Positions 10,835 through 51,020 of a stretch of 64,000 nucleotides of DNA are shown here, piece by piece. The position numbers and the translations under genes are program-made. The notes beneath the pieces were generated by a model. That model ran no database searches and was not told the DNA's origin. It saw only the letters and a list, made by a program, of their open reading frames with translations. Position 1 is the first letter of the stretch. Each line of letters begins with the position of its first letter. Origin of the DNA: Macrostomum lignano (Eukaryota). Where the stretch lies: assembly GCA_002269645.1 (NCBI GenBank), contig NIVC01000599.1, positions 1 through 64,000 on the forward strand, written 5' to 3'.

Positions 10835-11070
10835 TACCTTACCCATCTACCTACCTACCTATCTACCTACCTATCTATCTACCTACCTACCTACCTACCT
10901 ACCTACCTACCTATCAACCTATCAACCTATCAACCTATCTACCTATCAACCTATCAACCTATCAGCCTATCTACCTATCTACCTATCAACATATCTACCT
11001 ATCAACCTATCTACCTATCTACCTATCAACCTATCAACCTATCTACCTATCTACCTATTCACCTATCAAT
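10835..11070. repeat. ACCT/ATCT/ATCA tetranucleotide-based microsatellite
   Basis: Runs of CTACCTAC, CTATCTAC and CTATCAAC. Confidence 0.9.
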
Positions 11071-17461: not shown

Positions 17462-18247
17462 TTAATAAATGTCGATGCAATGAAACTCGATCAAATACAC
17501 TGGCAAGGATTGAGCAGGATCATATACCGCAAACTCGCGGTACAAAAACCCTGTATTATTAAGATTCGCCATCTTGCCGAACAAAGAGTCATAGCCAGCT
17601 TCCAGCACATACTTTGCATTCAGGTGCCTTTCTTCTAAAGTCTTCGGCCAGGCTTTGCCAATATTGACGTAAGAGCCAATAACGAATTTCGTAGGGCCTT
17701 CATCACAATAGGCAAGAGCTTTCTGAATTGTTGGAGTAAAGTAAATTGCTGGTCCGAAAGACCCTTTTGAATCAGCGAGAAAGCCATTTGAGAATATTGA
17801 ATCGATATTGGCGGCACGCGTTCCATGAAAGAGCAGCAAAGGAAAGCATGGTGAATCGTGACGACTTTGCCAATGGAGTTCGAATCGCTCCTCAAGAGTC
17901 GGGTTTTTCACCTTCTTTATGCCCACGAGTTTCAGTGGGCACGAAGAAAGTTTGTCTTTAACTTCCCAGAAGTGAGGATCATCCTCAGACAAGCGCGAGA
18001 GTTCGTACGCTTGGTCACGCGGAGGCTGTGCATTCCTTTTTCTGCTTTTCGCCAAAGGTTCACCAGGGCTTTGCAACTTCTCATAACGCTTGCGAAAAGC
18101 GTCGGCCGTCACGTTTGCCCAGTGGCTTCCTAGCTGGTTGATAAATCGCTCTCGGACTCCACTCCAATTCACAACGGGTTTTGTGCATAACGCCACCAAT
18201 CGAAACAAGAGATCATCGAACTCACTGGTCCACTTGGTGTAGTCCAT
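17462..18247 (-). CDS. Intronless 261-aa protein: Myb/SANT-like N-terminus + PARP-family ADP-ribosyltransferase catalytic domain (H-Y-E)
   Basis: AAAATGG start with an in-frame stop just upstream. KWTSEFDDLLFRLV...NWSGV...FRKRYEKL; basic patch KSRKR; LLLFHGT, GSFGPAIYFT, AGYDSL, REFAVYDPAQSLPVYLIEF. Confidence 0.88.
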   Translation of the reverse strand: MDYTKWTSEFDDLLFRLVALCTKPVVNWSGVRERFINQLGSHWANVTADAFRKRYEKLQSPGEPLAKSRKRNAQPPRDQAYELSRLSEDDPHFWEVKDKLSSCPLKLVGIKKVKNPTLEERFELHWQSRHDSPCFPLLLFHGTRAANIDSIFSNGFLADSKGSFGPAIYFTPTIQKALAYCDEGPTKFVIGSYVNIGKAWPKTLEERHLNAKYVLEAGYDSLFGKMANLNNTGFLYREFAVYDPAQSLPVYLIEFHCIDIY

Positions 18248-19189: not shown

Positions 19190-22100
19190 GGACAATTTTC
19201 TTCATTAATTTTATCCGCAAAAGACCACAACGAAAGATTTTCTGCCTTAACAGACAATATTTTCAACCAACATAAAGTTTTTTCCGCAGGTGGACAATTT
19301 TTGGCGCAAAAGAATAATTATTCCACTTACAGAAAATTGTATCCACACATGAAGATTCACTTGCAATAAATGTCTTTTAGTAGGCCTAGTCATTGTCCGT
19401 TTACGGACAAGATTATCCGCTGCCAGACAAAACTTCTCCGTTGTCGGAAAAATTTCTCCGTTGGTGGACAAACGTGTCCGTTTGCGGACAAAACTTCTCC
19501 AAAACTTCTCTGATGGTGGACAAAATTTCTCCGTTGGCGGACAAAATTTCTTCGTCGGCGAACAAAATTTTTCCGTTCGTGGACAAAGTTTGTCCGTTCG
19601 CGGAAAATATTTCTCTGTTGTCGGACAAAATTTCTCCGTTGGCGGACGAAATTGCTCCGTTGACGGACAAAACTTCTCCATTGCCGGACAAAATTTCTTC
19701 GTTGGAGGACAATATTTGTCCGTTGGCGGACAAAATGTCTCCGTTGACTGACAAAACTTCTCCGTTGGCGGACAAATTTCTTTGTTGGCGGACAATATTT
19801 GTCCGTTGGCGGACAAAATTTCTTCGTTGACGGACAAAACTTCTCCATTGGCGGACAATTTTCTCCGTTGGCGGACAAAACTTCTCTGATGGTGGACAAA
19901 ATTTCTCCGTCGGCGAACAAAATTTGTCCGTCCATGGACAAAGTTTGTCCGTTCGCGGAAAATATTTCTCTGTTGTCGGGCAAAATTTCTCCGTTGGCGG
20001 ACAAAATTTCTTCGTTGACGGACAAAACTTCTCCATTGGCGGACAAATTTCTTTGTTGGCGGACAATATTTGTCCGTTGGCGGACAAAATTTCTTCCTTG
20101 CGGACAAAACTTCTTCGTTGGCGGACAATTTTCTTTGTTGGCGGACAATTTTCTTCGATCGTGGACAATATTTGTCTGTTACAGACAAAACTTCTCCGTT
20201 GACGGACAAAATTTCTCCGTTGGCGGACAAAATTTCTCCGTTGGCGGACAAAATTTCTTCGTCGTCGAACAAAATTTGTCCGTCCATGGACAAAGTTTGT
20301 CCGTTCGCGGAAAATATTTGTCCGTAAGCGGACAAAATTTCTCCGTTGACGGACAAAACTTCTCCGTTGGCGGACAAATTTCTGTGCTGGCGGACAATAT
20401 TTGTCCGTTGGCGGACAAAACTTCTCCGTTGGTAGACATTTTTCTTTGTTGGCGGACAATTTTCTCCGTTGGCGGACAATATTTGTCCGTTGGCGGACAA
20501 AATTTCTTTGTTGACGGACAAAACTTGTCAGTTGGCGGACAAATTTCTGTGCTGGCGGACAATATTTGTCCGTTGGCGGACAAAACTTTTCCGTTGGTAG
20601 ACATTTTTCTCTGTTGGCGGACAATTTTCTCCGTTGGCGGACAATATTTGTCCGTTCGCGGACAAAATTTCTCCGTTGGCGGACAAAACTTCTCCGTTGG
20701 CGGACAATTTTCTACGTTTGCGGACAATATTTGTCCGTTGGCGGACAAAACTTTTCCGTTGGTAGACATTTTTCTCTGTTGGCGGACAATTTTCTCCGTT
20801 GGCGGACAATATTTGTCCGTTCGCGGACAAAACTTCTCCGTTGGCGAACAAAACTTTTCCGTTGGTAGACATTTTTCGTTTTTGGCGGACAATTTTCTTC
20901 GATCGCGGACAATATTTGTCCCTTACAGACAAAACTTCTCCGTTGACGGACAAAATTTCTCCGTTGGCGGACAATTTTCTCCGTTGGCGGACAAAATTTA
21001 TTCGTCGGCGAAAAAAATTTCTCCGTCCATGGACAAAGTTTGTCCGTTCGCGGAAAATATTTCTCTGTTGTCGGACAAAATTTCTCCGTTGACGGACGAA
21101 ACCTCTCCGTTGGCGGACAATTTTCTGTGTTGGCGGACAATTTTCTTCGATCGCGGACAATATTTGTCCGTTACAGACAAAACTTCTCCGTTGGTAGACA
21201 TTTTTCTTTGTTGGCGGACAATTTTCTCCGTTGGCGGACAATATTTGTCCGTTGGCGGACAAAATTTCTTTGTTGACGGACAAAACTTGTCAGTTGGCAT
21301 ACAAAGTTTGTCCGTTGGCGGACAACATTTCTTCCTTGGCGGACAAAATTTCTTCGTTGACGGACAAAACTTTTCCGTTGACGGACAAAAGTTCTCTGAT
21401 AGTGGACTAACCTTCTCCGTTGACGGACAAAACTTCTCCGTTGGCGGACAAAATTTCTCCGTTGACGGACAAAACTTCTCCGTTGACGGACAAAACTTCT
21501 CCGTTGGCGGACAAAATTTCTCCGTTGGCGGACAAAATTTCTTCGTTGACGGACAAAACTTCTCTGATGGTGGACAAAATTTCTCCGTCGGCGAACAAAA
21601 TTTGTCCGTCCATGGACAAAGTTTGTCCGTTCGCGGAAAATATTTCTCTGTTGTCGGGCAAAATTTCTCCGTTGGCGGACAAAATTTCTTCGTTGACGGA
21701 CAAAACTTCTCCATTGGCGGACAAATTTCTTTGTTGGCGGACAATATTTGTCCGTTGGCGGACAAAATTTCTTCCTTGCGGACAAAACTTCTTCGTTGGC
21801 GGACAATTTTCTTTGTTGGCGGACAATTTTCTTCGATCGTGGACAATATTTGTCTGTTACAGACAAAACTTCTCCGTTGACGGACAAAACTTCTCCGTTG
21901 GCGGACAAATTTCTGTGCTGGCGGACAATATTTGTCCGTTGGCGGACAAAACTTCTCCGTTGGTAGACATTTTTCTTTGTTGGCGGACAATTTTCTCCGT
22001 TGGCGGACAATATTTGTCCGTTGGCGGACAAAATTTCTTTGTTGACGGAAAAAAACTTGTCAGTTGGCGGACAAATTTCTGTGCTGGCGGACAATATTTG

Positions 22101-24700
22101 TCCGTTGGCGGACAAAACTTTTCCGTTGGTAGACATTTTTCTCTGTTGGCGGACAATTTTCTCCGTTGGCGGACAATATTTGTCCGTTCGCGGACAAAAT
22201 TTCTCCGTTGGCGGACAAAACTTCTCCGTTGGCGGACAATTTTCTCCGTTGGCGGACAATTTTCTACGTTTGCGGACAATATTTGTCCGTTGGCGGACAA
22301 AACTTTTCCGTTGGTGGACATTTTACTTTGTTGGCGGACAATTTTCTCCGTTGGCGGACAATATTTGTCCGTTCGCGGACAAAACTTCTCCGTTGGCGAA
22401 CAAAACTTTTCCGTTGGTAGACATTTTTCGTTTTTGGCGGACAATTTTCTTCGATCGCGGACAATATTTGTCCCTTACCGACAAAACTTCTCCGTTGACG
22501 GACAAAATTTCTCCGTTGGCGGACAAAATTTCTCCGTTGGCGGACAAAATTTCTTCGTCGTCGAACAAAATTTGTCCGTCCATGGACAAAGTTTGTCCGT
22601 TCGCGGAAAATATTTGTCCGTAAGCGGACAAAATTTCTCCGTTGACGGACAAAACTTCTCCGTTGGCGGACAAATTTCTGTGCTGGCGGACAATATTTGT
22701 CCGTTGGCGGACAAAACTTCTCCGTTGGTAGACATTTTTCTTTGTTGGCGGACAATTTTCTCCGTTGGCGGACAATATTTGTCCGTTGGCGGACAAAATT
22801 TCTTTGTTGACGGACAAAACTTGTCAGTTGGCGGACAAATTTCTGTGCTGGCGGACAATATTTGTCCGTTGGCGGACAAAACTTTTCCGTTGGTAGACAT
22901 TTTTCTCTGTTGGCGGACAATTTTCTCCGTTGGCGGACAATATTTGTCCGTTCGCGGACAAAATTTCTCCGTTGGCGGACAAAACTTCTCCGTTGGCGGA
23001 CAATTTTCTCCGTTGGCGGACAATTTTCTACGTTTGCGGACAAAATTTCTTCGTTGACGGACAAAACTTGTCCGTTGGCATACAAAGTTTGTCCGTTGGC
23101 GGACAAAATTTCTCCGTTGGCGGACAAAATTTCTCCGTTGGCGGACAATATTTGTCAGTTGGCGGACAAAACTTTTCTGTTGGTGGACATTTTACTTTGT
23201 TGGCGGACAATTTTCTCCGTTGGCGGACAATATTTGTTCATTATCGGACAAAATTTCTCTGGTGGCGGACAATTTTCTTCGTTTGCGGACAATATTTGTC
23301 GGTTGGCGGACAATATTTGTCGGTTGGCGGACAAAACTTTTCCGTTGGTAGACATTTTTCTTTGTGGGCGGACAATTTTCCTCGTTGGCGGACAAAGTTT
23401 GTCCGTTGGTGGACAAAATTTCTTCGTTGACGGACAAAACTTTTCCGTTGGCGGACAATTTTCTTTGTTGGCGGACAATATTTGTTCGTTGGCGGACAAA
23501 ACTTCTCCGTTGGCGGACAATTTTCTTTGTTGGCGGACAATTTTCTCCGTTGTCGGACAATATTTGTCCGTTTGCGGACAAAATTTCTCCGTTGGCGGAC
23601 AAAACTTCTCCGTTCGCGGACAAAATTTCACTGTTGACGGACAATTTTCTCCGTTGGCGGACAATTTTCTTCGTTGGTGGACAATATTTGTCCGTTGGCG
23701 GACAAAATTTCTCCGTTGGCGGACAAAATTTCTCCGTTGGCGGACAGTTTTTTCCGTTGGCGGACAATTTTCTTCGTTGGTGGACAATATTCGTCCGTTG
23801 GCGGACGAAATTTCTCCGTTGACGGACAAAACTTTTCTGTGGGCGGACAATTTTCTTTGTTGGCGGACAATTTTCTTCGTTGGCGGACAATATTTGTCCG
23901 TTGGCGGACAAAACTTTTCCGTTGGTGGACATTTTTCTTTGTAAGGGGACAATTTTCTCCGTTGGCGGACAATTTTTTTCCGTTGGCGGACAAAATTTCT
24001 CCGTTGGTGGACAATTTTCTTTGTTAAGGGACAATTTTCTCCGTTGGCGGACAATATTTGTTCATTGGCGGACAAAATTTCTCTGGTGGCGGATAATTTT
24101 CTTCGTTTGCGGACAATATTTGTCGGTTGGCGGACAAAACCTTTCCGTTGATAGACATTTTTCTTTGTGGGCGGACAGTTTTCCTCGTTGGCGGACAATA
24201 TTTGTCCGTTAACGGACAAAACTTCTCCGTTGACGGACAAAACTTCTCTGATGGTGGACAAAATTTCTCCGTTGGCGGAAAAAACTTCTCCGTTGGCGGA
24301 ATATTTTCTTTGTTGGGGGGACAATTTTTTCCGTTAGCGGACAATATTTGTCCGTTGGCGGACAAAATTTCTCCGTTAACGGACAAAATTTCTCCGTTTG
24401 CGGGCAAAACTTTTTCGTTGGCGGACAATTTTCTTCGTTGGCGGACAATATTTGTCCGTTGGCGGACAAAATTTCTTCATTGGCGGACAGAACTTCTTCC
24501 TTGGCGGACAGAACTTCTCCGTTGCTGGATAATTTTCTCCGTTGGCGGACAAAGTTTCTTCGTTGGCGAACAAAATTTGTTTGTTGGCGGACAAAGTTTG
24601 TCCGTTCGCGGAAAATATTTCTCTGTTGTCGGACAAAATTTCTCCGTTGGCGGACAAAACTTTCCCGTTGGCACACAGTATTTTTCCGTTGGCGAACAAA
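19190..24700. repeat. ~5.5-kb complex satellite, ~21-bp base unit (GGCGGACAAAATTTCTCCGTT) with higher-order blocks
   Basis: GGCGGACAA recurs throughout at about 21-bp spacing. The diagnostic block GTCCATGGACAAAGTTTGTCCGTTCGCGGAAAATATT recurs at ~19930, 20280, 21025, 21610 and 22580. Confidence 0.95.
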
Positions 24701-25625
24701 ACTCCGCTGCCCACCGCGGCTCCCCCAACAGCTCCGCTGCCCACCGCGGCTCCCCCAACAGCTCCGCTGCCCACCGCGGCTCCCCCAACAGATCCGCTGG
24801 CCACCGCGGCTCCCCCAACAGCTCCGCTGCCCACCGCGGCTCCCCCAACAGCTCCGCTGGCCACCGCGGCTCCCCCAACAGCTCCGCTGGCCACCGCGGC
24901 TCCCCCAACAGCTCCGCTGCCCACCGCGGCTCCCCAACAGCTCCGCTGCCCACCGCGGCTCCCCAACAGCTCCGCTGGCCACCGCGGCTCCCCCAACAGC
25001 TCCGCTGGCCACCGCGGCTCCCCCAACAGCTCCGCTGCCCACCGCGGCTCCCCCAACAGCTCCGCTGCCCACCGCGGCTCCCCCAACAGCTCCGCTGCCC
25101 ACCGCGGCTCCCCCAACAGCTCCGCTGCCCACCGCGGCTCCCCCAACAGCTCCGCTGCCCACCGCGGCTCCCCCAACAGCTCCGCTGGCCACCGCGGCTC
25201 CCCCAACAGCTCCGCTGGCCACCGCGGCTCCCCCAACAGCTCCGCTGCCCACCGCGGCTCCCCCAACAGCTCCGCTGCCCACCGCGGCTCCCCCAACAGC
25301 TCCGCTGCCACCGCGGCTCCCCAACAGCTCCGCTGCCCACCGCGGCTCCCCAACAGCTCCGCTGCCCACCGCGGCTCCCCCAACAGCTCCGCTGCCCACC
25401 GCGGCTCCCCCAACAGCTCCGCTGCCCACCGCGGCTCCCCCAACAGCTCCGCTGGCCACCGCGGCTCCCCCAACAGCTCCGCTGCCCACCGCGGCTCCCC
25501 CAACAGCTCCGCTGCTTGACGCCACTCCCCCAACAGCTCCGCTGCCCACCGCGGCTCCCCCAACAGCTCCGCTGCCCACCGCGGCTCCCCCAACAGTTCC
25601 GCTGCCTGCCGCCTCTTCCCCATCA
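24701..25625. repeat. 30-bp GC-rich tandem array (CCGCTGCCCACCGCGGCTCCCCCAACAGCT), about 30 copies
   Basis: Direct inspection; a few copies lack one C in a C-run; the last copies degenerate. Confidence 0.95.
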
Positions 25626-26599
25626 GCTCCGCCTCTATCAGGATTTTAGGGAATTTACCACCTATTCGTCTGATCGGGTGCACGTTGTACACCGACAAAA
25701 TAATGGTTAACATAATGGGACATGCAGTTATCAACAAAGCATTCTCTAGGAAGCTTGATCGGCACAAATAATTGGCACCAGACGTATTGCTTTTGACGAT
25801 GTAAGAGACTTGCGCCAATTCAAAAGGGACGCCATATGTTTCTCAAGCAACACCTGTGAAGCGAAGTCACGTGATTTTTATGAGTATTTCAAGACACAGC
25901 AGTGGCAGAAAGAAAGATTAAGGTGAAGGTTGTGAAGTGAGTTGTTTTTTATTCAGGCTAGTATTTTGCGTTGGTTTAGCTTACGCCTGTAGCAGAGAAA
26001 GTGGTCAAACTCGGGAAAGTGGAAGTTAAAAAATGACCCCGGTTGGCATTTATTGCATTTCATTATATCAAGAACTTTTATTGAAATGTTAGACCTACAT
26101 TCCTTGGTTCTAGCTCGTATGAGTGATCCAAAGATCAAATACTAAGTTTGCTGCTCAATCTGCTTTCCATATATACCTTGCTTGAGAAGCATATGGATCA
26201 GTGAGGAGTCTGGCTAGTCTCGTTTAGATCGTCAAAAGCAATACTACAGCATGGCATTTCAATGTATTTCAAGAGATTCAAACGGTTATTACGCTAGTAG
26301 CATTCAACAGCAGATTGGTTTCGGCGCCACGCAATGTAAAATTTTTGGCGCAATGTTACGTCAGTACATGCGGAAGTACTATATAGCTGTAATGCAAAAC
26401 AGCGGCAGTAGCTAAATATTGACACCCAATATTTAGCTACTGCCGCGTAATATTTTGCGAAAATATTACACGCAATAAATAGCATTGACACCAAACGGTA
26501 AAAAGTAAAACACAAGAAAAGTACACGGAATTAAAAGTAAATAGTTGGCTTGGTAGGTTCGGAATTAAATCAGTGAAACAGTAAGAAGCATAAACTTTT

Positions 26600-39130: not shown

Positions 39131-39594
39131 GAATGATAATGATAAAGTTAGGGCTGCTGTACACTTCTGTATGAGTGTGTGCCTGCATATGTATCCGCGT
39201 GCTTGTATGCCTACTCAGGGGAGTTGGCAGAATGGGCAGTAATGCCTCTCGCCAATTGTGTAGAGATGTTCCGAAATTTCGATTTCGATTTCGATTTTCC
39301 GAAATTCGGATTTTTTTATGTGAGGGTTCCCCGACAGATATTCGCGACAGATATTTTCTCCTTCAATCGGATAATTCAAACAAAAAATGAATTTATGTTT
39401 CGGGATGCATTACTTACTCTGATGCCGTATTCAGCTTTAAAATTTTGTAGACAAAAATTTTATGTCTTAAAGAAAAAAATATTAGTACGAATACAAAGTG
39501 TGTCAAAACGAATTTTATCACACATTCCTTACAAAAAAATTCTCACGCCAAAGAACTTATGAAGTAACGGTAGCAATGAATTTTTTGTCAGTTT

Positions 39595-40421
39595 CTGACG
39601 CATGTCTCAACTTTGCAATGACACCTTAGACACATGTCCTACTTTTGTATTTCCTGGGATATCTGCTTCCAAAGTGTGCTTTCCGTGAGTCATTCATCAT
39701 CCGTACCAAGACCAACCAAAACTTTGACTTATCGCTCCGTCTCTATGCTTCAATCATTTGCTCTGAAACTTCTACCACTTCTTGACGCATGTCTCAGCTT
39801 TGCAGTGACACCTTAGACACATGTCCTACTTTTGTATTTCCCGGGATATCTGCTTCCAAAGTGTGCTTTCCGTGAGTCATTCATCATCCGTACCAAGACC
39901 AACCAAAACTTTGACTTATCGCTCCGTCTCTATGCTTCAATCATTTGCTCTGAAACTTCTACCACTTCTTGACGCATGTCTCAGCTTTGCAGTGACACCT
40001 TAGACACATGTCCTACTTTTGTATTTCCCGGGATATCTGCTTCCAAACTGTGCTTTCCGTGAGTCATTCATCATCCGTACCAAGACCAACCAAAACTTTG
40101 ACTTATCGCTCCGTCTCTATGCTTCAATCATTTGCTCTGAAACTTCTACCACTTCTTGACGCATGTCTCAGCTTTGCAGTGACACCTTAGACACATGTCC
40201 TACTTTTGTATTTCCCGGGATATCTGCTTCCAAAGTGTGCTTTCCGTGAGTCATTCATCATCCGTACCAAGACCAACCAAAACTTTGACTTATCGCTCCG
40301 TCTCTATGCTTCAATCATTTGCTCTGAAACTTCTACCACTTCTTGACGCATGTCTCAGCTTTGCAGTGACACCTTAGACACATGTCTGACTTTTGTATTT
40401 CCCGGGATATCTGCTTCCAAA
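39595..40421 (+). repeat. 187-bp tandem repeat, ~4.4 copies (left arm)
   Basis: Units start at 39634, 39821, 40008, 40195 and 40382 (partial). Confidence 0.97.
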
Positions 40422-40573
40422 TTGTGCGTTCCGTGGGTTATGTCTATATATCTCTCGCTGCGTCTTTTGCTCAAGCATACTACGAGTCTACGAGACACGC
40501 GATCAAACACATGATTGGTTTGCGTATTTCTCGAGATATTTTTTGAGCTCTTTGGTTTCAAAATGACACCTTT

Positions 40574-43377
40574 CCCAATCAAAAAGAAGTTGTCTTAAGA
40601 CGTCTTAGAATAGTCTTAAGATGGCTAAAGACACCTCAAGACAATTTCAAGATATCTTCCACTTTGCTTCCACAAGCTATCCTGATTAAGTTGTCTTGAA
40701 GATGACTTGAAATTGACTTTTATGAGATGTCTTGTTGAAGACATCTTTAAGACATCACCTTAAAGACTAAAAATTTACATAAACAACTGTTTCTACTGTA
40801 AGTAGGAAGTTTCAGATACAAATTTATCTAGATCGTTAAAATCAATAAAAAATAAAACAAGCAACTATTGTGACATTTATCAAAAAATTTTGTTGTATTG
40901 TAGTCTGTGGAAGGTGTGCCTATTATTAAAAATCCTTTACGCTTTTGGAGTGCAATTATATGCAATTTTTTGTATTGAGTCGTTGCAAACTCTGAGACAA
41001 AGTTTAACTACAACAGTTTTGATTGGAGTAAATATATTTACAAAATTCTAAACAGCAAAGCATTAAAAAAGACTAAGTTGCAATATATATCGGTGATGCT
41101 TTTGTTAAAAACAGCTAAAATCAATATGGCGGAACGACATTTTTAAAAAGGACTAAAAGACAACCTTGTTCACCGTGAAGGCCGCCTAATTCTCGAACAC
41201 TTGCTTCTATCTTTTGTAATAAGTTTCAATTTTTCATTGGCTGCTATAGCCTATATAGATTTCTGGTGTAAGCCCTACCCTAGATTTATCTTTACTTAAT
41301 GCGATAATGTATTACTATTCGTAATTCGTGATGATACATCTACTATCCTCAAATTAAACCTTCCTAGTAGTATTTTTTACTAATTCTTCCTTGGATAGCT
41401 TCTAGGATTGTATTTCATATTCTAGTGCCAGGTGCCAGCAACAAACCCAGATTGGCCAGAAATGTTTTTATGCAATAGGCAATAGGGATGCTATGTAACA
41501 TCCTGACTTAAAAATTACAATTTTAAATTGGACCTTGGATGCAATGTTTTTTTAGTTAGGCCTACTGCATATCTATTGCTATGCCTAGCACTAGTAAGCA
41601 CTAGTTAACTAATGCATAGTCATGTGTACATTTTAAGTTAGGCCTTAAAAGATTCCGGCATTAACTAGAGGCCCATGTACTAGGCCTAAAACTAAAAATA
41701 TATGTTTTATTTACTTCTAGCTTTTTAAAGTCAAAGTTTTATAGTTGTTGAATTGGCTTATTAGGCTATTTTGTTCTGTTGTAGGCCTCTTAGCCTTAGA
41801 TAGGCCCTAGGCCTAGCTTCTTCCTTAAGCCTAAATAGTTTTTGTTTTGATTTTTATGTCAAAAGTAATAAATAATTTCCATGAGCCTAGGGTATAGCTA
41901 GGTTTATTTTTTATATGTAGAGTGTATATATGCACTTTTAATTTAAAATTGCACCCAGAAATTGAAAATTGCAATTTAAGGACAGTCTTATAACCTGATT
42001 TTCTGTTAAACTTGAAGCCACATTTGCATTGCCCTAAATGGCTAAAATAAGAAAAATAAAAAATTGCACTTTGAGCCTTAAAATTACACTATAAAAATGA
42101 GTATAGAGTGCACTTTTGTACCTTGTCTCTGGCAAAAAAAGAAAACCTTGGCCTATAGGCCTTTATATATTGCTTCCTCTTTGCCTTTATTATTGGCTAA
42201 TGGCATATATATGATGTTTTCAATATATCAATATTTTGAATATTAGGCCTAGTCATTAGTGCATTTTTCTTGGCTAGGCCAATGAAAATTTAAATAAAAA
42301 ATAGATATAGCCTTATAATTTATTATTAGGCCTATATCACATTCAAAAATTGGATTAGGCCTAATAGAGAATAAATAGAGTTGGTATGCCTAGAAGTTTT
42401 ATATAAAATTGATATTCTAATCTTTTTATTTTGCTTTGAGATTAGGCCCTAAGCTTTAGCCTATGTATTTAAGCCTAAGGCAAAGTTATTGTATAATACA
42501 CTTGTGTGAATATATAGTAGGGGCCTAGGCAATTTATTTATTAGATTTTTAATGTATATTAGTATAATAATCTATTATTTATTATTTTTTGTTTTTTTAC
42601 TTATGAATTTCAAATTATTTCAGCCTAACAACCTATAAACTATAACCTTTATTAAACTTATCCTTTTCAGCCTTATCAAAACATGCTATCCATCATAGTG
42701 GAAGCTAACCTGGATCTTGAATCTTCCTGGATTGAGCCAATTCTAAACTAGTAGTTGGCTAGCAAAGGATCAATTTACAGCAAGTTTTCCACCAAGCAAT
42801 GAGCAACTTGGTCATTATTGCATTAACCAAGTATTTCTATGCAATGACTGGGTATGATGCATTATAAAATTATACACTTGCACTTGAGTATTTTTGCATT
42901 TTTATTTAGTGTATTTTAACTTGTTTTTGATTCACCATTTTATTGCTTCTGTGACTTTTAAACTGTGCCTTTTATAAAATGAAAATATAAATCATAAATT
43001 ACATTGAACCATGTTTAGAAGCCTACTAAATAGCTTCTCTTTCATATCAATATTGCCTGAAACGAAACAAAAGAGTGCTGTAATATTTTTAGTCATTTTT
43101 CTTTTAAACAACTGTGATTGCAATGGCAACAGCATTTCTTAAATGATCTTGGGCAAGATGTCTTCTGCAAGTCATCTGGAAGATGTCTTTAAGTAGATTT
43201 TAAGATGTCTTGAAGATGTCTGAAGACGTCTTCAAGTTATCTCTAAGTTGTCTACAAGTGTTGCAAGGAGCCAATTTTTAGACCGAATTAAGTCAATTGT
43301 AAGATGTCTTGAAGACATCTTTCTGTCTTATGCAAGACATCTTTAAGACATAATTAAGCCAACTTTTTTTGATCGGG
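40574..43377. mobile_element. 2.8-kb non-autonomous CCC-ended element with 2-bp TT TSD (CMC/EnSpm-like)
   Basis: CCCAATCAAAAAGAAGTT / AACTTTTTTTGATCGGG (16/18 complementary); TT both sides; dense subterminal GTCTT/AAGAC motifs at both ends; AT-rich interior with no long ORF. Confidence 0.75.
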
Positions 43378-44216
43378 TTAGATAGAGTCAGCTAGCTTTT
43401 GTGTTATTCCTGAACAATGTCTGTTTCTTGGCGAATCCGGTGGCGAAAAGTATATTGTCGACATAAGTTTTTTGTAAAGTATTACAAGCAGTTTCTCGAA
43501 ACAAAAAACAATAACTCATTAAGAACAACTGTATTTGTGTAAATGTCTTGTACTATGTATAGATTATTGCAGTTACTATCGTAGTTGAGGGGAAAGAACA
43601 AATGGTCGTATGAATAAAGTGAGTAGTTGCTCAAACTCGGCGAGATTCTCAAATCAGTATGAATAAAATGAGTGCGTCCTCCTGAGCAAGTGCTCAAAAT
43701 CAATTTCCCAAGAGTTACATGTAGTGCTCTCCCCGTGAGCAAATGCTCGGTGACTGAGTAGAGACTCGCTTCAGTATGAATAAACTCTGGTCATAAACGA
43801 TTGCAATTTGTCTTGAGATCTTGCTCAGCAAAAGTTGAGTCTCCTCTGTAGTAGACTCACTGGTTGAGCAGCATCCAGCCATGTCCCTAAGCGGCAAATA
43901 GCGTCTATGTCCCTACGCTATTGAACTCAAATTTATAGGCAACCCATAGGCTTTTTCGCACAAGTAACGAAAACCAGCGGTCGCACTTTACCTGTTACCG
44001 CCATACAAAAGTGGCCTATCTAGGGAATATAAGATCTATGATTCATATGAACATTGAGCAACTGCTCCAGATCAGAGCAGTTGCTCGAGTTCGAGCTTTT
44101 GCTCAATCTCAGAGTTTGAGGTGAAACTCGCCAGTTATTGCTCACTGTAGTCATACGGCCAAAATAAAGCTAGGAAATTTTAGGAAATGTAACTTTCATA
44201 TAAACAAACATAACCG

Positions 44217-47187
44217 TCAGCTGTCTAAATTAATGCATGTGACACACACCTTGTTGTTCTGGTCTTGTTGTCGAGTCCAGCAAGATTTGTGAAACCAGAA
44301 GAGGCACGATGGGCACTCGATCTGCAGATTTTATGCGGTATAGCTATGCCTCATACGCTCGTATATACTTACATGAATTACCTTAGTGCGTCCAAAAAGT
44401 TCTTAGACACCCCTCCTATCTCTGCACATGTTCAATCGATTTTTATAAAAATTGACAAAAACATGTACCTATATGTAATGAATTCAGTGCTAAAGTTTCA
44501 GCTTAATCGGGTTGACATAGCAAAAGAAATTGATCGTTTCTAAGGTACACTAAGGTGTTAATTTTCAACGTAACTTACCCACTCAATTGTACTCGTAGAA
44601 CGATTTCGACCCCGCGGCCGGGGTTCTTCTAAATGGCAACCGTGGCATGTGTTTTGCTCTGATTTTTCGTCAAAATTGGTTATTGCTGTCTTTATAATGC
44701 CTCGAGCAACGGACAGCTTTGGCTGCACATTAGGTATAATAGTGCACCTACCAAGCAATAAATTTCTTCCAAAGAGCGAAACAAAAACGCCGCAGGAGTC
44801 GGAGTCTATTTGCTGCGTGCAAATCCGATGGGAAACTGCGAAGCATTCCCTCTGGGAGTTTTCAATGAGTGGGCCAAGACATTCGTCGACATCTGACAAT
44901 AGGAGTAGCGCGCTGAAACCGTAAAACGAATTTTATAGATGCAGAGATTTGCATAAGGTGTAATAAAATAATTTTAGGCTTGGTACATTCCTTACTTCCA
45001 CTTTCTTGCTATTTCCTCCACTTCATTCTTTCTTCTTCCGCCAGTGCGCCTCATCGAGTCCAGTGAGTAGATTTTTTTCTCATCAAGAAGGATTGCTACG
45101 AGCCAAAAATGGCTCGGCGACAACATTGGAATCAGAATTTTTGTTATTTTCTAATTGTTGGATAGTGGTAAGAACAAAATGGATTGTATCGTTTCTTTAA
45201 TAATTAATATACGAGTAATTTGTATTTGCAATTGTACTTACGCTTCTTCCTGTCGCGTAGTTCTGCAAGGCTTCTTTTGTCGGAAGCAGAAGATTGTTTG
45301 GGTTGTCAATGACTGCATAAAAGTCGCTTTGCTTCATGACAACAGCGTCTTCGATTCCGCTAGCCACCGCAGCCAAATAGCCGTATACAACCTAATATGT
45401 TACAGCATACGTGTATGGTTACAAGAATGTGAAACGTACTTAGGGAATTTACTCAGATTACACAAAATTACGCTCACGGAGTAATCCAACCAACTAGATC
45501 CATCAAGAGTTGCTAGTTGATCATAAGTTACTATTGTGCCGTGAATATCTCGGAGAGTGACAAAATTAGGCTCCGGCTGTGTCGACTGCTGATTCTGAAA
45601 CTGTTGCTGCTGCCGTTCTGTCTGCTGCTGTTGCTGTTGTGGGGGCTGGTCATGTTGCTGTTTCTGAGACTGTTGCTGCTGCCGTTCTGTCTGCTGCTGT
45701 TGCTGTTGTGGGGGCTGGTCATGTTGCTGATTCTGAGACTGTTGCTGCTGCCGTTCTGTCTGCTGCTGTTGCTGTTGTGGGGGCTGGTCATGTTGCTGAT
45801 TCTGAGAGTGATAAATTATTTTTACAAAGTTCCTCGTTGTATACTTCGCTCGTCTTCTATCCCACTGCTCCTGCGCTCCTTCTGGAGTCATGGAATCGTG
45901 CTTTCTCTTTCGAGGGCAGAAAAATGGTCGAGACTTCGTTTTGTGGGCGATGTTTGCTTCTTTGATTCTGTCATGAATGAATTCTGCGTTGGATTTACAA
46001 AACATTGCGGGCGAAAGAGGCAGTTCCAGAGTTGATTTTATTTGTTTGATTATGGAAGCTAGGTAATTTAATTGCTCAGCAGAGTACATTACAACTCGAA
46101 GTGGCTCGCAGCATCTTTCTCTCACAATTCCAGGCAAATATGGGTGTGAGTAATCACGTTTCAGTCCTTCCTGCATGCGAATCAATTCTATAAAAACATC
46201 TTTGTGCAGTTTCTCCTTCCTCCGAGAGCTTTTCAATACCCTTTTAAGGACATTTCTTGATTTGCAGGAGTCAAAATTCATCGCGAGAACATGCATCATA
46301 TGTTTCTTTTCAAGCATGAGTTTCCGATGGGCTTCTGTAACACCTTTGCAAGAGTCGATTTTCCTTTTTAACAAAATTTCTTCTGCTTGAGTCGTTCTCC
46401 TAAACGTTGGCGATTCAGCTTCTTTGTGGTTATAAGTTCCCTCTGCATAAACCTTCCAAACCCATCTTTCTGAACACGTGGGTTGTTCTTTCATAATAAA
46501 AGTAAATTTGCGAAGGCACCCTTTAATTTTACACGCAGCCTTAACGGTCCAAAAATTGCTTTCCGCCTTCCGAGATCGAAGAGATTTAACGTGACAGTAA
46601 CCTCTCATGCGTAGACAGCAAGTCGAGATTCTACGCAGTGCTTTACAGAGGGCTTCGTTTAGGTTGGATTTCGAAAAGGAAAATTTACGCGTATTTTCTA
46701 GCTGCTTGAGGTCAACGGCTTTAATTTCTGCGGGTTCAAAATATATTTCTTGGGTATCTGTTTCTTGATCCAAAACTAAAAGGCTCTCTTTAGGAGGTGG
46801 TGTCTGGTGTCTCGACTCGTGCATATTATCTTCTTCTTCAATGCAAACTACCGTCCCAGAGCCTCCAGTTGAGGATGATGAGTTTTCAGTATCTGATGGA
46901 GCCCCTGACGACTGTAAGGGTACATGTACATGTACTGGTGTTGGAGGTGAACTGGGTGGACTGGGTGCTTGATTGGAATCCCGTCGAATCCAATTCCACA
47001 TAAGCAATCGATTGCGAACTGTGTTGCGTAGATTGAGTCTCGCTGACAATAATAAATAAATTGCTCCTGGCGAACGATAGTCTGTTGGAATGCCATGTTT
47101 TTTAACAGCCTCCAAAACGGCGGAACTAATCTGGAAAGTAACCAACAAACGCACAGAATAAAATGCGCGTTTCTTTAAGTCTACCAT
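44217..47187 (-). CDS. Transposon-encoded 817-aa protein: transposase-like N-terminal region + Q-rich repeat + Ulp1/SENP (C48) protease + PHD finger; exons 47187-45478, 45391-45242, 45150-44996, 44912-44579, 44321-44217
   Basis: All four introns are GT-AG and phases are consistent (2454 nt total). QLATLDGSSWLDYS|VVYGYL, PSHFWLV, IYSLDSM, QQIDSDSCGVFV (His/Asp/Gln/Cys). CHGC...EW|IECPSC..WFHKSC...CVTC is C4HC3. Confidence 0.82.
45590..45805 (-). repeat. Three 69-bp coding repeats (SQNQQHDQPPQQQQQQTERQQQQ)
   Basis: In frame within exon 1 of the transposon gene. Confidence 0.9.
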
Positions 47188-47817
47188 CGATCCTACATGT
47201 GGTAGACGTAGAGGCTACCCATACGGCAGTCAGCAACACGATATGTTATTTAACTTACCTCTTTCTTCGATGGGTAACAAGAACACGCAATAAACAATGT
47301 AAAAAGCAAGACTATAAGCTTCATACTGAAGTAGAGAATATATACTATTTTCCAATAATTAGTTTTTATAAATTCACCACATTTACGCAGACATTGACAA
47401 ACCAAAAAGGACAGAATTTTTTTGACAAGCGCGTGAACGATTCTGAAATTGAAAAACTTGACATTAACTTTGCATCCATATCCAAAGATCCACAAAATAC
47501 TGCTGCTGAATTTGCTATAAGAGGTGTGTACAGTTTCTTGCATTCCTAGAGTAATTTGCTTAAACGAGGACAGTTGGAATGTACAGCAACTTCTGTGTAC
47601 AGTTGTCAGTTGCAGAGAAACAAACAGCATTGATTATAGGAATAGCGCAAATTAGATGAGTGATGACTCAACATACTTAAGGTACCGATCAATGATAGCT
47701 AAAAAGTGCATTAGGAATTGACAAAACTTGCCAGTTGCAAAAATAAAGCATTAAAGACGTAGTATGAAGTCAAAGCCAGCAGACAATTGTTCTGACTGAA
47801 ACTGCAAAGTGCATAGA

Positions 47818-49772
47818 AAGCACACTTTGGAAGCAGATATCCCGGGAAATGCAAAAGTCAGACATGTGTCTAAGGTGTCACTGCAAAGCTGAGACATGCG
47901 TCAAGAAGTGGTAGAAGTTTCAGAGCAAATGATTGAAGCATAGAGACGGAGCAATAAGTCAAAGTTTTGGTTGGTCTTGGTACGGATGATGAATGACTCA
48001 CGGAAAGCACACTTTGGAAGCAGATATCCCGGGAAATACAAAAGTCAGACATGTGTCTAAGGTGTCACTGCAAAGCTGAGACATGCGTCAAGAAGTGGTA
48101 GAAGTTTCAGAGCAAATGATTGAAGCATAGAGACGGAGCAATAAGTCAAAGTTTTGGTTGGTCTTGGTACGGATGATGAATGACTCACGGAAAGCACACT
48201 TTGGAAGCAGATATCCCGGGAAATACAAAAGTCAGACATGTGTCTAAGGTGTCACTGCAAAGCTGAGACATGCGTCAAGAAGTGGTAGAAGTTTCAGAGC
48301 AAATGATTGAAGCATAGAGACGGAGCGATAAGTCAAAGTTTTGGTTGGTCTTGGTACGGATGATGAATGACTCACGGAAAGCACACTTTGGAAGCAGATA
48401 TCCCGGGAAATACAAAAGTCAGACATGTGTCTAAGGTGTCACTGCAAAGCTGAGACATGCGTCAAGAAGTGGTAGAAGTTTCAGAGCAAATGATTGAAGC
48501 ATAGAGACGGAGCGATAAGTCAAAGTTTTGGTTGGTCTTGGTACGAATGATGAATGACTCACGGAAAGCACACTTTGGAAGCAGATATCCCGGGAAATAC
48601 AAAAGTAGGACATGTGTCTAAGGTGTCACTGCAAAGCTGAGACATGCGTCAAGAAGTGGTAGAAGTTTCAGAGCAAATGATTGAAGCATAGAGACGGAGC
48701 GATAAGTCAAAGTTTTGGTTGGTCTTGGTACGGATGATGAATGACTCACGGAAAGCACACTTTGGAAGCAGATATCCCGGGAAATACAAAAGTCAGACAT
48801 GTGTCTAAGGTGTCACTGCAAAGCTGAGACATGCGTCAAGAAGTGGTAGAAGTTTCAGAGCAAATGATTGAAGCATAGAGACGGAGCGATAAGTCAAAGT
48901 TTTGGTTGGTCTTGGTACGGATGATGAATGACTCACGGAAAGCACACTTTGGAAGCAGATATCCCGGGAAATACAAAAGTCAGACATGTGTCTAAGGTGT
49001 CACTGCAAAGCTGAGACATGCGTCAAGAAGTGGTAGAAGTTTCAGAGCAAATGATTGAAGCATAGAGACGGAGCAATAAGTCAAAGTTTTGGTTGGTCTT
49101 GGTACGGATGATGAATGACTCACGGAAAGCACACTTTGGAAGCAGATATCCCGGGAAATACAAAAGTCAGACATGTGTCTAAGGTGTCACTGCAAAGCTG
49201 AGACATGCGTCAAGAAGTGGTAGAAGTTTCAGAGCAAATGATTGAAGCATAGAGACGGAGCGATAAGTCAAAGTTTTGGTTGGTCTTGGTACGAATGATG
49301 AATGACTCACGGAAAGCACACTTTGGAAGCAGATATCCCGGGAAATACAAAAGTAGGACATGTGTCTAAGGTGTCACTGCAAAGCTGAGACATGCGTCAA
49401 GAAGTGGTAGAAGTTTCAGAGCAAATGATTGAAGCATAGAGACGGAGCGATAAGTCAAAGTTTTGGTTGGTCTTGGTACGGATGATGAATGACTCACGGA
49501 AAGCACACTTTGGAAGCAGATATCCCGGGAAATACAAAAGTAGGACATGTGTCTAAGGTGTCACTGCAAAGCTGAGACATGCGTCAAGAAGTGGTAGAAG
49601 TTTCAGAGCAAATGATTGAAGCATAGAGACGGAGCGATAAGTCAAAGTTTTGGTTGGTCTTGGTACGGATGATGAATGACTCACGGAAAGCACACTTTGG
49701 AAGCAGATATCCCAGGAAATACAAAAGTAGGACATGTGTCTAAGGTGTCATTGCAAAGTTGAGACATGCGTC
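47818..49772 (-). repeat. 187-bp tandem repeat, ~10.4 copies, inverted relative to 39595-40421 (right arm)
   Basis: Ten identical-length 60-aa pseudo-ORFs at exact 187-bp steps from 47870 to 49735. Confidence 0.97.
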
Positions 49773-51020
49773 AGAAACTGACAAAAAATTCATTGCTACC
49801 GTTACTTCATAAGTTCTTTGGCGTGAGAATTTTTTTGTAAGGAATGTGTGATAAAATTCGTTTTGACACACTTTGTATTCGTACTAATATTTTTTTCTTT
49901 AAGACATAAAATTTTTGTCTACAAAATTTTAAAGCTGAATACGGCGTCAGAGTAAGTAATGCATCCCGAAACATAAATTCATTTTTTGTTTGAATTATCC
50001 GTTTGAAGGAGAAAATATCTGTCGCGAATATCTGTCGGGGAACCCTCACATATTTTTTTAGAGCAAATTTCGATTTCGAAAAAATTTCGGAAGTCAAAAT
50101 TTCGGAAGTGCCTACTTCCGAAATTTTTATCTAATTTTAGTTTTTTAGAACTTCGTTACTGTCTTTTATCGGTGATATTATACAGTTTTTACATGTAAAA
50201 CTTTTTGAATTTGTTAAAACTGTTCCATGCATGTAGGACATGTAACATGGTAGTTTGTACATGTGGAACTGTAAATTTTCGTAAATTTTGTTGCACTTTA
50301 AAGCTGCAAAAGCGTCTGCTGATATATTGCATATTTTTCGCATTTTACAGTATATATATGTACATTTACCGTACATGTACATGCATTATCGTTTACACGA
50401 TCTCAGTTATTGCTAGTCATGCAGTACTGATACATGTACATTTTAACTGTACATTTTATACATGTACAACTCAGTATACACCCTATACCCTACCGCCTAG
50501 ACGGATAAAGGCAGAGAAATTTGTTTTGTCTAGCAGGGAAAAGGCGCGCTTTGCTGCCGTGCTTTAATACCGTCTAGTAATATATGCAATATACGCGCCT
50601 TAGTCTTTCTTTTAAAGGCACTAGTTCAAATAAATTACTTAACATATTTACAGTATATGTAGTTTTCGCGTCGAAAAAAAAAATTTGCATTTAAAAGTGG
50701 CAATGAGGGATTCTACTTATTTAGTGGCCGAAAATAAACGAACTTCTGCTAAACATACATGTATTTTGTTTTGCATGAGCAGTAAATCGAAAGTAGAAAA
50801 GTGAGTGTCGGTTGTACTAAACTTTGTTTTTCTGAATTACGATTTCGGAAAATTTCGATTTCGATTTCGATTTCGACAGAAAATTCGCTTTCGGAACATC
50901 TCTACGACTACAATTGTGTGCCTATGTTGCTTAAAGTGTACCAGGGTGCATACAACCCCCCTGCCTCTAATAAAAAATCATTGCAACTATCATACATGTG
51001 CAACCCCCCTGATTTACACT

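Follow-up and report, generated by a model that had tools for sequence, protein, structure and literature searches.

A foldback element with a single gene

The 64-kb window (the whole stretch of Macrostomum lignano DNA that was analysed, 64,000 nt) carries a 10.7-kb foldback element at 39318-50051 that holds a single gene, and its parts are given here from left to right.

39310..39317, no strand: left target-site duplication (TSD), ATTTTTTT, 8 bp, identical to 50052-50059 directly outside the inverted termini
39318..40441, plus strand: left arm, a 278-bp terminal unique segment (tip ATGTGAGGGTTCCCCGACAG) and then 4.5 units of 187 bp (39596-40435; TRF)
40442..44216, no strand: AT-rich interior of ~3.8 kb, its GC content about 31%, lacking any ORF that reaches 90 aa
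47187-45478, 45391-45242, 45150-44996, 44912-44579 and 44321-44217, minus strand: exons 1-5 of the gene, with all introns GT..AG and homology spanning the junctions
47816..50051, minus strand: right arm, 10.5 units of 187 bp (47816-49773) in the opposite orientation to those of the left arm, and then a 278-bp terminal segment
50052..50059, no strand: right TSD, ATTTTTTT, read directly

The two arms, of 1124 and 2236 nt, form an inverted repeat of 1125 nt that is 99% complementary, and their terminal 278-bp segments carry 2 differences; judged by this 99% identity between arms, the copy is young. Because ATTTTTTT is of low complexity, the TSD counts as moderate evidence. The 187-bp unit is nucleosome-sized. 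Inspection of the interior revealed short AAGATGTCTT/AAGACATCTT motifs grouped in two places (40686-40755 and 43155-43351), and no match to the transposase family described below was found there in any frame.

Splicing the exons of the minus-strand gene (47187..44217) gave a coding sequence of 2454 nt, that is 817 codons and a TGA, which exactly reproduced the five-exon open frame proposed by the first-pass annotation. Alignment with relatives revealed homology continuing through 4 of 4 exon junctions, such that a split codon at the exon 3/4 junction supplies the N of an invariant 'WN.F' motif and the exon 4/5 junction rebuilds the invariant 'W-x-x-C-x2-C' of a PHD finger. Because homology crosses them, the junctions are supported beyond splice consensus. 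The motifs by which the protein can be read fall at aa 219-224 (CKIKGC), 351-373 (GIVRERCCEPLRVVMYSAEQL), 631-636 (PSHFW), 648-653 (SLDSM), 705-713 (QQIDSDSCG) and 761-812 (the C4HC3 finger).

A transposase head joined directly to a Ulp1-PHD tail

Along the 817-aa protein, we distinguished the following segments.

46963..47130, minus strand: N-terminal helical motif 'YRSPGAIY...RNTVRNRLLMWNWIRRD', aa 20-75, common to full-length family members
46027..46770, minus strand: transposase head, aa 140-387, with a zinc-finger module, a helical linker and the 'LPGIVRERCCEPLRVVMYSAEQL' strand pair
46018..46026, minus strand: deletion junction, aa 388-390 (E-L-P), where two profile domains abut in the protein
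45811..46017, minus strand: post-core basic tail, aa 391-459 (profile positions 675-771), predicted disordered (AF2)
45587..45807, minus strand: Q-rich linker with an in-frame 69-bp (23-codon) tandem repeat in 3.2 copies (TRF, 98% matches; direct-repeat family D1)
44681..45567, minus strand: Ulp1/SENP-type cysteine protease, aa 541-749, exons 1-4 (Pfam C48, SENP5 and Ulp1 profile match)
45103-45120, 45052-45069 and 44789-44815, minus strand: motifs with the Ulp1 catalytic residues His634, Asp651, and Gln705/706 plus Cys712, respectively, aligned with SENP5/Ulp1
44235..44647, minus strand: C4HC3 PHD finger, aa 761-812, exons 4-5 (C-x2-C-x21-C-x2-C-x4-H-x2-C-x11-C-x2-C)

The N-terminus, which the first-pass annotation had taken to be transposase-type, aligned over aa 100-387 with family profile positions 74-352 (E 2e-46), and an exhaustive phmmer search returned 66 homologues (best 5e-19), every one of them matching over aa ~180-385. 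Nearly all long phmmer matches continue from here into a conserved core whose D, D, CxxH and E-x6-K are invariant; in relatives, the 'LPGIVRERCCEPLRVVMYSAEQL' strand pair lies just before the first catalytic D. Homology thus identifies the N-terminus as a non-catalytic transposase head, made of zinc finger and helices, from a DDE family for which Pfam has no model. Within the head, the zinc-finger module is four-stranded with ligands C191, C219-x4-C224 and H254; 16 of 21 conserved family columns are identical, all Zn ligands among what is kept, and AF2 modelled the window protein's head with pLDDT 80-97, so that the retained head is predicted to fold and looks intact. Upstream, the N-terminal helical motif matched P0002 at aa 29-71 (iE 5.5e-5, phmmer), aligned also with P0003 and P0012, and was modelled as helices (pLDDT 76-87). 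Ranked by probability, the best fold match of the head finger was the AtWRKY1 domain (probability 0.57, E 0.56), and the Pfam FLYWCH, FAR1 and WRKY models did not match the finger in either the window protein or the full-length family members; a WRKY-like similarity in the models is thus only suggestive.

Directly after the head, the profile alignment showed one clean in-frame gap in which the junction replaces profile positions 353-674 (322 positions), and with them D1 (LYLDATGS), D2 (ETDFSWA), the CxxH, an alpha-helical insertion and the E (N..VENWF..VK). The RNase-H-type D, D, E triad is therefore absent from the window protein, and no core remnants were found anywhere in the 64-kb window. 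An in-frame loss of the core near 46050 had been suspected from the letters alone, and alignment with longer family members both located what is missing and placed the junction at 46018-46026. We conclude from the alignment that the whole catalytic core was removed by a single in-frame deletion, which has a 1-in-3 chance of staying in frame, and that the DNA-binding head was thereby joined directly to the tail. Because the core is absent, the product cannot cut or join DNA. Past the junction, profile positions 675-771 align to aa 391-518, with correspondences such as 'LSPAMFCKSN...' to the family's 'LRPgkFIRk...' and 'EQWDRRRAKY' to 'E.WGKk.RAkY'. Three apparent small remnants of the core in a patchy MAFFT alignment ('ELPLSP'~'LDATGS', 'AEFIHD'~'AEMICN' and 'SRPFFCP'~'NPYFCP') were rejected, as the profile alignment puts these residues in the post-core tail.

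The tail was evaluated in the window copy by sequence and in the relative P0009 by its model. A Pfam search with the whole 817-aa protein missed Ulp1 entirely, while the C-terminal part alone matched Peptidase_C48 (PF02902) at E 2.7e-5 (24.5 bits, cut-off 20.7) and SENP5 at E 1e-3 with H, D, Q and C aligned. A profile of four fused proteins searched against PDB found Ulp1 (1euv) at E 3.4e-10, and the AF2 model of P0009 matched the Ulp1 fold 2hkp at E 2e-6, with NEDP1/DEN1 and bacterial CE-clan deubiquitinases also among its fold matches. The catalytic residues that the first-pass annotation had called intact (H634, D651, Q705/706 and C712) align throughout, the D being N in two relatives, and the domain is a predicted deSUMOylase that is apparently intact. 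The PHD finger likewise proved complete in its ligand spacing, all 8 ligands being invariant in the four fused proteins. The four-sequence profile matched PHD fingers of KAT6A, DPF3 and KDM5B in PDB at E 5e-4 to 2e-2 (KAT6A and DPF3 at E 5e-4 to 3e-3), and single-sequence matches were weak, with PF16866 (PHD_4) at E 0.011 and PF00628 at E 0.077, both below cut-off. PHD fingers read histone H3 tails, and this one is a putative histone reader.

The full-length family and its placement

Three full-length relatives (P0009, P0019 and P0012; 995-1212 aa) share both the head and the Ulp1-PHD tail with the window protein but have ~340 extra residues between them, in the order helical motif, zinc finger, helical linker, D-D-(CxxH)-E core, basic tail, Ulp1 and PHD. 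Core residues are close to invariant across the family (D 49/53, D 44/44, C..H 39/39, E 30/30); in P0009 numbering these include C392..H395 and E585, with K592 invariant seven residues after the E, and the AF2 model of P0009 is confident over residues 31-630. The Ulp1-PHD module itself is conserved at 23-25% identity across the fused subfamily, with ligands and catalytic residues invariant apart from the D that two relatives replace by N, and Pfam further revealed PHD fingers in 9 of 30 family members, either N- or C-terminal, and UCH in 2 of 30. By this domain order, Ulp1(+PHD) is part of the family's full-length transposase and no special acquisition of the window copy. A Mya arenaria gene model with both UCH and Ulp1 (P0049: head, UCH and Ulp1, without D1 and D2) was considered as a parallel core-less lineage and rejected, since it keeps the E motif and its breakpoints differ; it either arose in an event of its own or reflects faulty gene prediction.

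The family was found only by exhaustive phmmer. Word-indexed protein searches with the full protein, its first 461 aa and an alignment of five sequences returned 0, 0 and 1 match, respectively, the first of them, capped at 8000 candidates, probably being swamped by Q-rich and other low-complexity words. No relatives were found in the viral or metagenome contigs searched, nor did the TIR tip of the window element occur in the genome contigs. Going by the homologues that phmmer returned, the family is widespread in animals, its named members coming from a fish and a clam. An independent full-length relative at the element level (L002, the same locus as L003), with its end defined by comparison with the diverged copy L004, has a one-sided 186-bp array beside one terminus, 13-14-nt TIRs and an 8-bp TSD.

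To place the family among transposon superfamilies, we combined fold, motif pattern and element architecture, which together make an assignment to Mutator, and to Rehavkus within it, fairly probable. Among the best 50 PDB fold matches of the P0009 model, ISCth4, of the IS256 family that is the bacterial kin of Mutator, was the sole transposase (E 7.9e-5), listed three times, with Hermes and other hAT structures absent. The NOF/MULE-type likeness suggested by the first-pass annotation was supported by fold, where ISCth4/IS256 is the best solved match, and by element architecture; it did not carry over to sequence, where links were negative or marginal: the Pfam MULE model (PF10551) reached 1 of 30 full-length members at E 0.13, NCBIfam IS256 models gave no match to the family, and a PDB sequence search with the family core gave none.

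It is rather unlikely that the family lies outside Mutator, whether in hAT, in Zisupton/KDZ or in a superfamily of its own, although several observations would suit such a position. An 8-bp TSD was seen in two independent elements (the window element and L002) and is typical of hAT while also falling at the lower end of the 8-11 bp of the Mutator superfamily; the TIRs of L002 are short; Pfam MULE had no significant match; and a hAT-annotated viral protein in BFVD was matched, more weakly than ISCth4, at E 1.7e-3. The family has both a CxxH after the second D and a K seven residues after the E, motifs that are not unique to Mutator, the CxxH being common to hAT, P, Kolobok and Mutator. In addition, 8 bp is the TSD length of Zisupton (PMC12730594), which, being common to hAT as well, does not discriminate, and Rehavkus is tabulated at 9 bp (PMC6446971). 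It speaks against a position outside Mutator that neither a hAT dimerisation domain nor a BED finger was found by Pfam in the 30 family members, that the fold matches hold ISCth4 and no hAT structure, and that the KDZ model PF18758, though able to detect metazoan Zisupton (PMC9297572), matched 0 of 30 full-length members at E<=10, a result that gives the KDZ/Zisupton alternative no support. The 'TN..VE..F..VK' pattern (K at E+7) and the C-x4-C...H beta-sheet finger moreover suit Mutator/IS256, and the PHD finger together with foldback arms bearing subterminal arrays suits Rehavkus (PMC6446971; 10.1101/2024.12.02.626372).

Origin and role of the core-less copy, and known counterparts

Structurally, we read the locus as a foldback element whose transposase-Ulp1-PHD fusion has lost its core by deletion, at a probability of about 0.85. 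A single deletion, a young copy and the finding that the head was joined directly to the Ulp1-PHD tail in 0 of the 66 proteins returned by exhaustive phmmer make a defective deletion derivative the plainest reading. Because the 8-bp TSD and 99% identical arms coexist with a product that has no catalysis, they point to mobilisation in trans, unless the deletion arose after insertion. A full-length relative would then have mobilised the element via the shared arms; alternatively, the deletion could have been made in place, post-insertion, by interrupted gap repair. Most likely, in our view, the copy is young and non-autonomous, a deletion derivative that was mobilised in trans.

If the gene is expressed, its head would still recognise the family termini and the 187-bp arrays, to which the protein would bring an apparently intact deSUMOylase and histone-reader module, and its most likely effect would be competition with active transposase, as KP competes in the case of the P element, a KP-like effect that we would guess at by analogy. 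By such analogies a KP-like repressor or an anti-silencing role is possible for the window protein, and that it is a working regulator on its own 187-bp arrays, as a SUMO-stripping anti-silencer or a KP-like titrator of transposase, we consider improbable. The intact frame with all catalytic and ligand residues fits a functional protein and a young dead copy equally. The latter, a pseudogene that is not expressed or yields an unstable product and whose open frame reflects the insertion's youth, is on the whole unlikely but a serious contender: the 99% identical arms leave little time for decay, a single deletion will preserve the frame one time in three, nothing in the 10.7-kb element apart from this gene is coding, its interior including 3.8 kb of non-coding DNA, and the 69-bp triplication within the linker is recent. 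Set against a dead copy, every splice site and the promoter-proximal side remain intact, confident folding is predicted for the head, and all Ulp1 catalytic and PHD ligand residues are kept. At the other extreme, core loss could be a specialisation that produced a selected anti-silencing factor, whose head binds the 187-bp arrays while its PHD finger reads histones and its Ulp1 desumoylates silencers. Every part needed for this is present and looks intact, ubiquitin/SUMO-type proteases recur in the family (UCH in 2 of 30; UCH with Ulp1 in Mya arenaria), the conservation of Ulp1-PHD across the fused subfamily indicates that selection acts on the module as such in full-length transposases, and there is a Mutator-type precedent in VANC of VANDAL, a sequence-specific anti-silencing protein with targets that form tandem repeats (PMC5735166). 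However, such a role would belong to the full-length transposase and not specially to the window copy, the truncation is one deletion in a young copy, and 0 of 66 direct head-tail fusions argues against an established truncated lineage, so we hold selected specialisation to be very improbable.

As a defective deletion derivative, the window locus would be an ordinary, trans-dependent copy of a foldback Mutator-like transposon, and what it documents is a DDE family with an 8-bp TSD and ~186-bp arrays that goes unrecognised by sequence in Pfam, NCBIfam and solved structures. Because SUMOylation is central to animal transposon silencing, a transposase-borne deSUMOylase is a testable counter-defence candidate; if the regulatory reading were true, the family's Ulp1-PHD tail would be a built-in counter-defence against SUMO-dependent silencing, and the core-less protein an animal counterpart of plant VANC or P-element KP. 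The natural core-less allele also uncouples DNA targeting and the tail from catalysis and could be used directly as a reagent, and the arms illustrate how such elements carry tandem repeats of nucleosome length and vary them, which is relevant to the origin of satellite DNA.

Several known systems resemble parts of this element. In Kaonashi/KI-MULEs and other plant MULEs with ULP1-like genes (Hoen et al. 2006; van Leeuwen et al. 2007, cited in PMC2836005), a Mutator-type element is likewise associated with a Ulp1-family protease; the ULP-like gene there is typically captured or separate, rather than a conserved C-terminal domain of the transposase, with neither PHD fusion nor foldback architecture. 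VANC of Arabidopsis VANDAL, also from a Mutator-like element, counters silencing by acting on non-coding tandem repeats within that element (Hosaka et al. 2017, PMC5735166), which is how the anti-silencing idea would work here, but it is a separate ORF with no Ulp1 or PHD, acts on plant DNA methylation and is not homologous to the window protein. KP of the Drosophila P family, and deletion derivatives such as Ds from Ac, parallel the in-frame internal deletion and mobilisation in trans. KP keeps an N-terminal site-specific DNA-binding domain and has lost catalysis, as the window protein appears to have done by sequence and model; it differs in belonging to the P/THAP superfamily and in that its repression is experimental, whereas the window protein is known from sequence and also keeps two enzymatic/reader domains downstream of the deletion.

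Closer still in domain content, MuDR-type transposases of Hydra magnipapillata and Branchiostoma floridae, and Ginger1, carry a C-terminal Ulp1, some of them with PHD (Bao, Kapitonov & Jurka 2010, PMC2836005), so that fusion of Ulp1(+PHD) to MuDR-type transposases is already known from lancelet and Hydra. They share with our family Ulp1 followed by PHD at the C-terminus of an animal cut-and-paste DDE transposase; they differ in being full-length, the window copy's DDE core being deleted, and Ginger1 has an unrelated, retroviral-type integrase core. Rehavkus elements are transposons of the foldback type that have a PHD finger and subterminal tandem repeats of variable make-up (bioRxiv 10.1101/2024.12.02.626372; PMC6446971). 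Compared with these published descriptions, the window element and its family agree in having one transposase gene, a core that is most IS256/Mutator-like by fold and that the standard Pfam MULE model misses, 4.5 and 10.5 copies of the 187-bp unit in the inverted arms, and a C-terminal PHD finger. The window element departs from them in its TSD (8 bp in both elements versus the tabulated 9) and in the window copy's lack of a catalytic core. Membership in Rehavkus would fit this combination, and the window element belongs, as a defective copy, to a type of element that is already known, and is not a new system.

Gene model and the missing catalytic core

The five-exon gene of the window protein proposed in the first-pass annotation was reproduced exactly, with 817 codons followed by TGA and introns that are all GT..AG.

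Gene of the window protein
Exons 47187-45478, 45391-45242, 45150-44996, 44912-44579 and 44321-44217, minus strand

Relatives with uninterrupted frames align straight over every junction. An invariant W-N-x-F motif gets its N from the codon that exons 3 and 4 share, and in the PHD finger the invariant W-x-x-C-x2-C is rebuilt where exon 4 meets exon 5. The predicted splicing is therefore supported by homology over the junctions, beyond consensus splice sites. A strong acceptor-like site (GTTACTTTCCAG, then ATT; at about 47132, within window 47125-47187, minus strand) lies 19 codons past the proposed ATG, and homology to the relatives' N-termini starts there; coding may in fact begin in an exon further upstream, and the annotated start may fall in an intron.

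Neither Pfam nor a word-indexed protein search found a match in the N-terminal half of the window protein. An exhaustive phmmer search of residues 1-461 against 1.84 billion representatives revealed 66 proteins at E<=1e-3 (best 5e-19), all matching over residues ~180-385, with named members that include Triplophysa rosa (fish) and Mya arenaria (clam) proteins. Nearly all long matches have the head region running directly into a conserved block with D, D, CxxH and E invariants. These matches form a DDE transposase family, one for which Pfam, NCBIfam and PDB give no sequence relative.

Conserved catalytic motifs of the transposase family
LYLDATGS: first D, conserved in 49 of 53
ETDFSWA: second D, conserved in 44 of 44
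CxxH: C and H, conserved in 39 of 39
N..VENWF..VK: E, conserved in 30 of 30, with K at E+7 invariant

The head retained in the window protein looks intact, with residues 140-385 modelled at pLDDT 80-97 (AF2) and all zinc ligands plus 16 of 21 conserved family columns kept.

Three full-length relatives, P0009 (995 aa), P0019 (1010 aa) and P0012 (1212 aa), each match the window protein twice, over its head (residues 160-376) and its tail (residues 384-804), and carry ~340 extra residues, the DDE core, between head and Ulp1-PHD tail. Because they match both parts, the transposase-Ulp1-PHD fusion counts as the normal full-length form in one subfamily. When aligned to a family profile HMM built from 30 full-length members, the window protein resolved into two abutting domains (profile positions 74-352 at residues 100-387, E 2e-46; positions 675-771 at residues 391-518), with positions 353-674, which hold both aspartates, the CxxH, the helical insertion and the glutamate, reduced to the three residues E-L-P (nt 46018-46026). 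Scattered core remnants in a MAFFT alignment were rejected, as the profile alignment puts those residues in the post-core tail ('LSPAMFCKSN...' = 'LRPgkFIRk...'), which indicates that one clean deletion, in frame, took out the core. The rest of the 64-kb window showed no core-like sequence. Separately, P0019 and P0012, two of the three full-length relatives with the Ulp1-PHD tail, carry N instead of the first catalytic D (LNATGS).

The Ulp1-PHD tail and the transposase superfamily

We consider the predicted Ulp1 and PHD domains of the window protein sound because several comparisons agree. Pfam missed Ulp1 when the whole protein was searched, and Peptidase_C48 exceeded its curated cut-off with the C-terminal part alone (E 2.7e-5, 24.5 bits versus 20.7). 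Human SENP5 aligned over the entire catalytic domain (E 1e-3), its H, D, Q and C falling opposite those of the window protein. A tail profile of the window protein and three relatives matched yeast Ulp1 (3.4e-10) and SENP5 (1.3e-9), and its last 55 positions matched KAT6A, DPF3 and KDM5B PHD fingers (5e-4 to 2e-2). None of the eight C4HC3 ligands varies among the four fused proteins, nor do the catalytic H, Q and C. The substrate is presumably SUMO rather than NEDD8 or ubiquitin, and the PHD finger presumably binds histones. P0009 and P0012 carry N, not D, at the Ulp1 catalytic Asp position.

The profile and phmmer matches, with the family's D, D, CxxH and E, bear out the transposase-like N-terminus described in the first-pass annotation; its Ulp1/SENP catalytic residues agree with Pfam, SENP5 and the four-protein profile, and its complete C4HC3 PHD finger agrees with that profile. 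The in-frame loss of a DDE core that it proposed likewise matches the two abutting profile domains, and the longer family members in which that core was to be sought have it between head and tail.

Beyond these fusions, two further proteins, family members or more distant kin, bear other ubiquitin-like-protease modules: a Mya arenaria protein (P0049, WAR14967.1) carries UCH and Ulp1 after a partly deleted core, and an 814-aa ENA protein (P0067) shows, by eye, a papain-like H...C pattern at its C-terminal end, where no Pfam family was found; this suggests a transposase family repeatedly associated with deubiquitinase/deSUMOylase domains. The best viral structural match of a full-length relative was an uncharacterised bracovirus protein (O92526, Chelonus inanitus bracovirus; E 9e-12, 689 columns, BFVD), and a polydnavirus genome may thus carry a family member, a possible route for horizontal transfer.

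As to superfamily, the P0009 model is confident across residues 31-630 (AF2); in PDB comparisons its tail resembles Ulp1/SENP structures (E 2e-6), and its core resembles ISCth4 (IS256 family; three entries, E 7.9e-5 to 1.6e-3), the sole transposase among the 50 best matches. Within the Mutator superfamily, IS256 forms the bacterial branch. Also consistent with Mutator/IS256 are the family's 'TN..VE..F..VK' motif with K at E+7, the CxxH, and a four-stranded C-x4-C...H finger whose best-probability fold match is a WRKY domain at a non-significant E of 0.56. Against or neutral to this assignment are Pfam MULE, which matched 1 of 30 family members weakly (E 0.13), a weak match to a hAT-annotated pandoravirus protein (E 1.7e-3, BFVD) and the 8-bp target duplication. 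The KDZ/Zisupton domain PF18758, by which metazoan Zisupton is detected (PMC9297572), matched 0 of 30 members. We put the odds that the family is Mutator-like at roughly two in three. Transposases that end in Ulp1 with PHD were reported in 2010 for MuDR-type elements of Hydra and Branchiostoma and for Ginger1 (PMC2836005).

The window element and its surroundings

The window protein gene is enclosed by an inverted-repeat structure whose TIR tip is ATGTGAGGGTTCCCCGACAG and whose 278-bp terminal segments differ at 2 positions between the arms.

The window element and a full-length relative
39310-39317 and 50052-50059: target duplication, 8-bp direct repeat ATTTTTTT, flanking both arms
39318-40441: left arm, 278-bp terminal unique segment, then 4.5 copies of a 187-bp unit
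47816-50051: right arm, 278-bp terminal unique segment and 10.5 copies of the 187-bp unit
478-17348 of JGI metagenome contig Ga0558716_16351 (L002): element of ~16.9 kb, ends set by comparison with a diverged copy (L004)

The remaining interior of the window element comprises 3.8 kb of AT-rich, non-coding sequence. It contains short, partly palindromic motifs (AAGATGTCTT / AAGACATCTT, 11-bp spacing) in two clusters, at 40686-40755 and 43155-43351, 2.4 kb apart, and a related GAC(G/A)CATGTC sub-repeat occurs twice per 187-bp unit. These motifs may serve as binding sites for proteins or mark the termini of a small element nested here, and the sub-repeat is a candidate target of the window protein's head. 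The L002 element encodes an intronless transposase-Ulp1-PHD ORF (1212 aa, 10001-13639) and has TIRs of 13-14 nt, an 8-bp target duplication GCAATATC and an array in which a 186-bp unit is repeated ~15 times (14208-17143), adjoining the terminus on the downstream side of the gene. The two units are near-equal in length without sequence similarity, and both approximate one nucleosome repeat. The fit to Rehavkus is imperfect because its target duplication is tabulated as 9 bp (PMC6446971) versus 8 bp in the window element.

The window is chromosomal DNA of a eukaryote, probably an animal. Its host genes are a cytochrome P450, a PARP-domain ORF, a Golgi pH regulator and one for an EF-hand protein, and it also contains LINE debris, mariner debris and many tandem arrays.

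Other features of the window
11554-12702 and 16431-16967: cytochrome P450, two exons whose Pfam p450 matches (E 1.5e-50 and 3.9e-39) cover consecutive stretches of the profile
13299-16395 (~3.1 kb): P450 intron satellite, 129 copies of a 24-bp unit, 98% matches
17465-18247, minus strand: intronless PARP catalytic-domain ORF, 261 aa, Pfam E 8.9e-17, just downstream of the P450 gene
19500-25632: ~5.2 kb of 21-bp (103-bp higher-order) repeat, then directly 31 copies of a GC-rich 30-bp repeat

The 24-bp satellite generates spurious ORFs of >1000 codons in four frames, and the repeats at 19500-25632 together generate numerous long artefactual ORFs on both strands. ATTTCGA / CCGAAATTTCGG motifs are abundant on both insertion flanks (39270-39309 and 50060-50130), and the element apparently landed within another short repetitive or palindromic sequence.

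Origin and possible action

The window protein is without a catalytic core, and the ends of its element are intact, nearly identical and bounded by a target duplication. A full-length relative from the family may have mobilised the element in trans; alternatively, the core may have been lost in place, when gap repair following excision was interrupted. The window protein, if expressed, would still bind family termini and arrays via its head.

From this architecture the first-pass annotation had suggested an anti-silencing factor, an idea for which VANC, encoded by Mutator-like VANDAL elements, provides a precedent, its targets forming tandem repeats (PMC5735166). A selected product of this kind has to be set against a single deletion, with a one in three chance of being in frame, a window copy that is young, and a head joined directly to the tail in 0 of the 66 proteins from the exhaustive search; these observations favour an accidental derivative over a selected product. 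A counter-silencing role, if the Ulp1-PHD tail has one, would belong to the full-length transposase. Architecture and in-frame core loss thus stand, on profile alignment and full-length relatives, and the proposed function is speculative.

The interest of the locus lies chiefly in a poorly catalogued transposase family and in a testable tie between a SUMO protease carried on a transposase and the silencing of transposons through SUMO. How the window protein might act is best compared with KP, the P-element repressor, which has an in-frame internal deletion, keeps its DNA-binding domain and competes with transposase. Unlike KP, the competitor here would also bear an apparently intact deSUMOylase and PHD finger.
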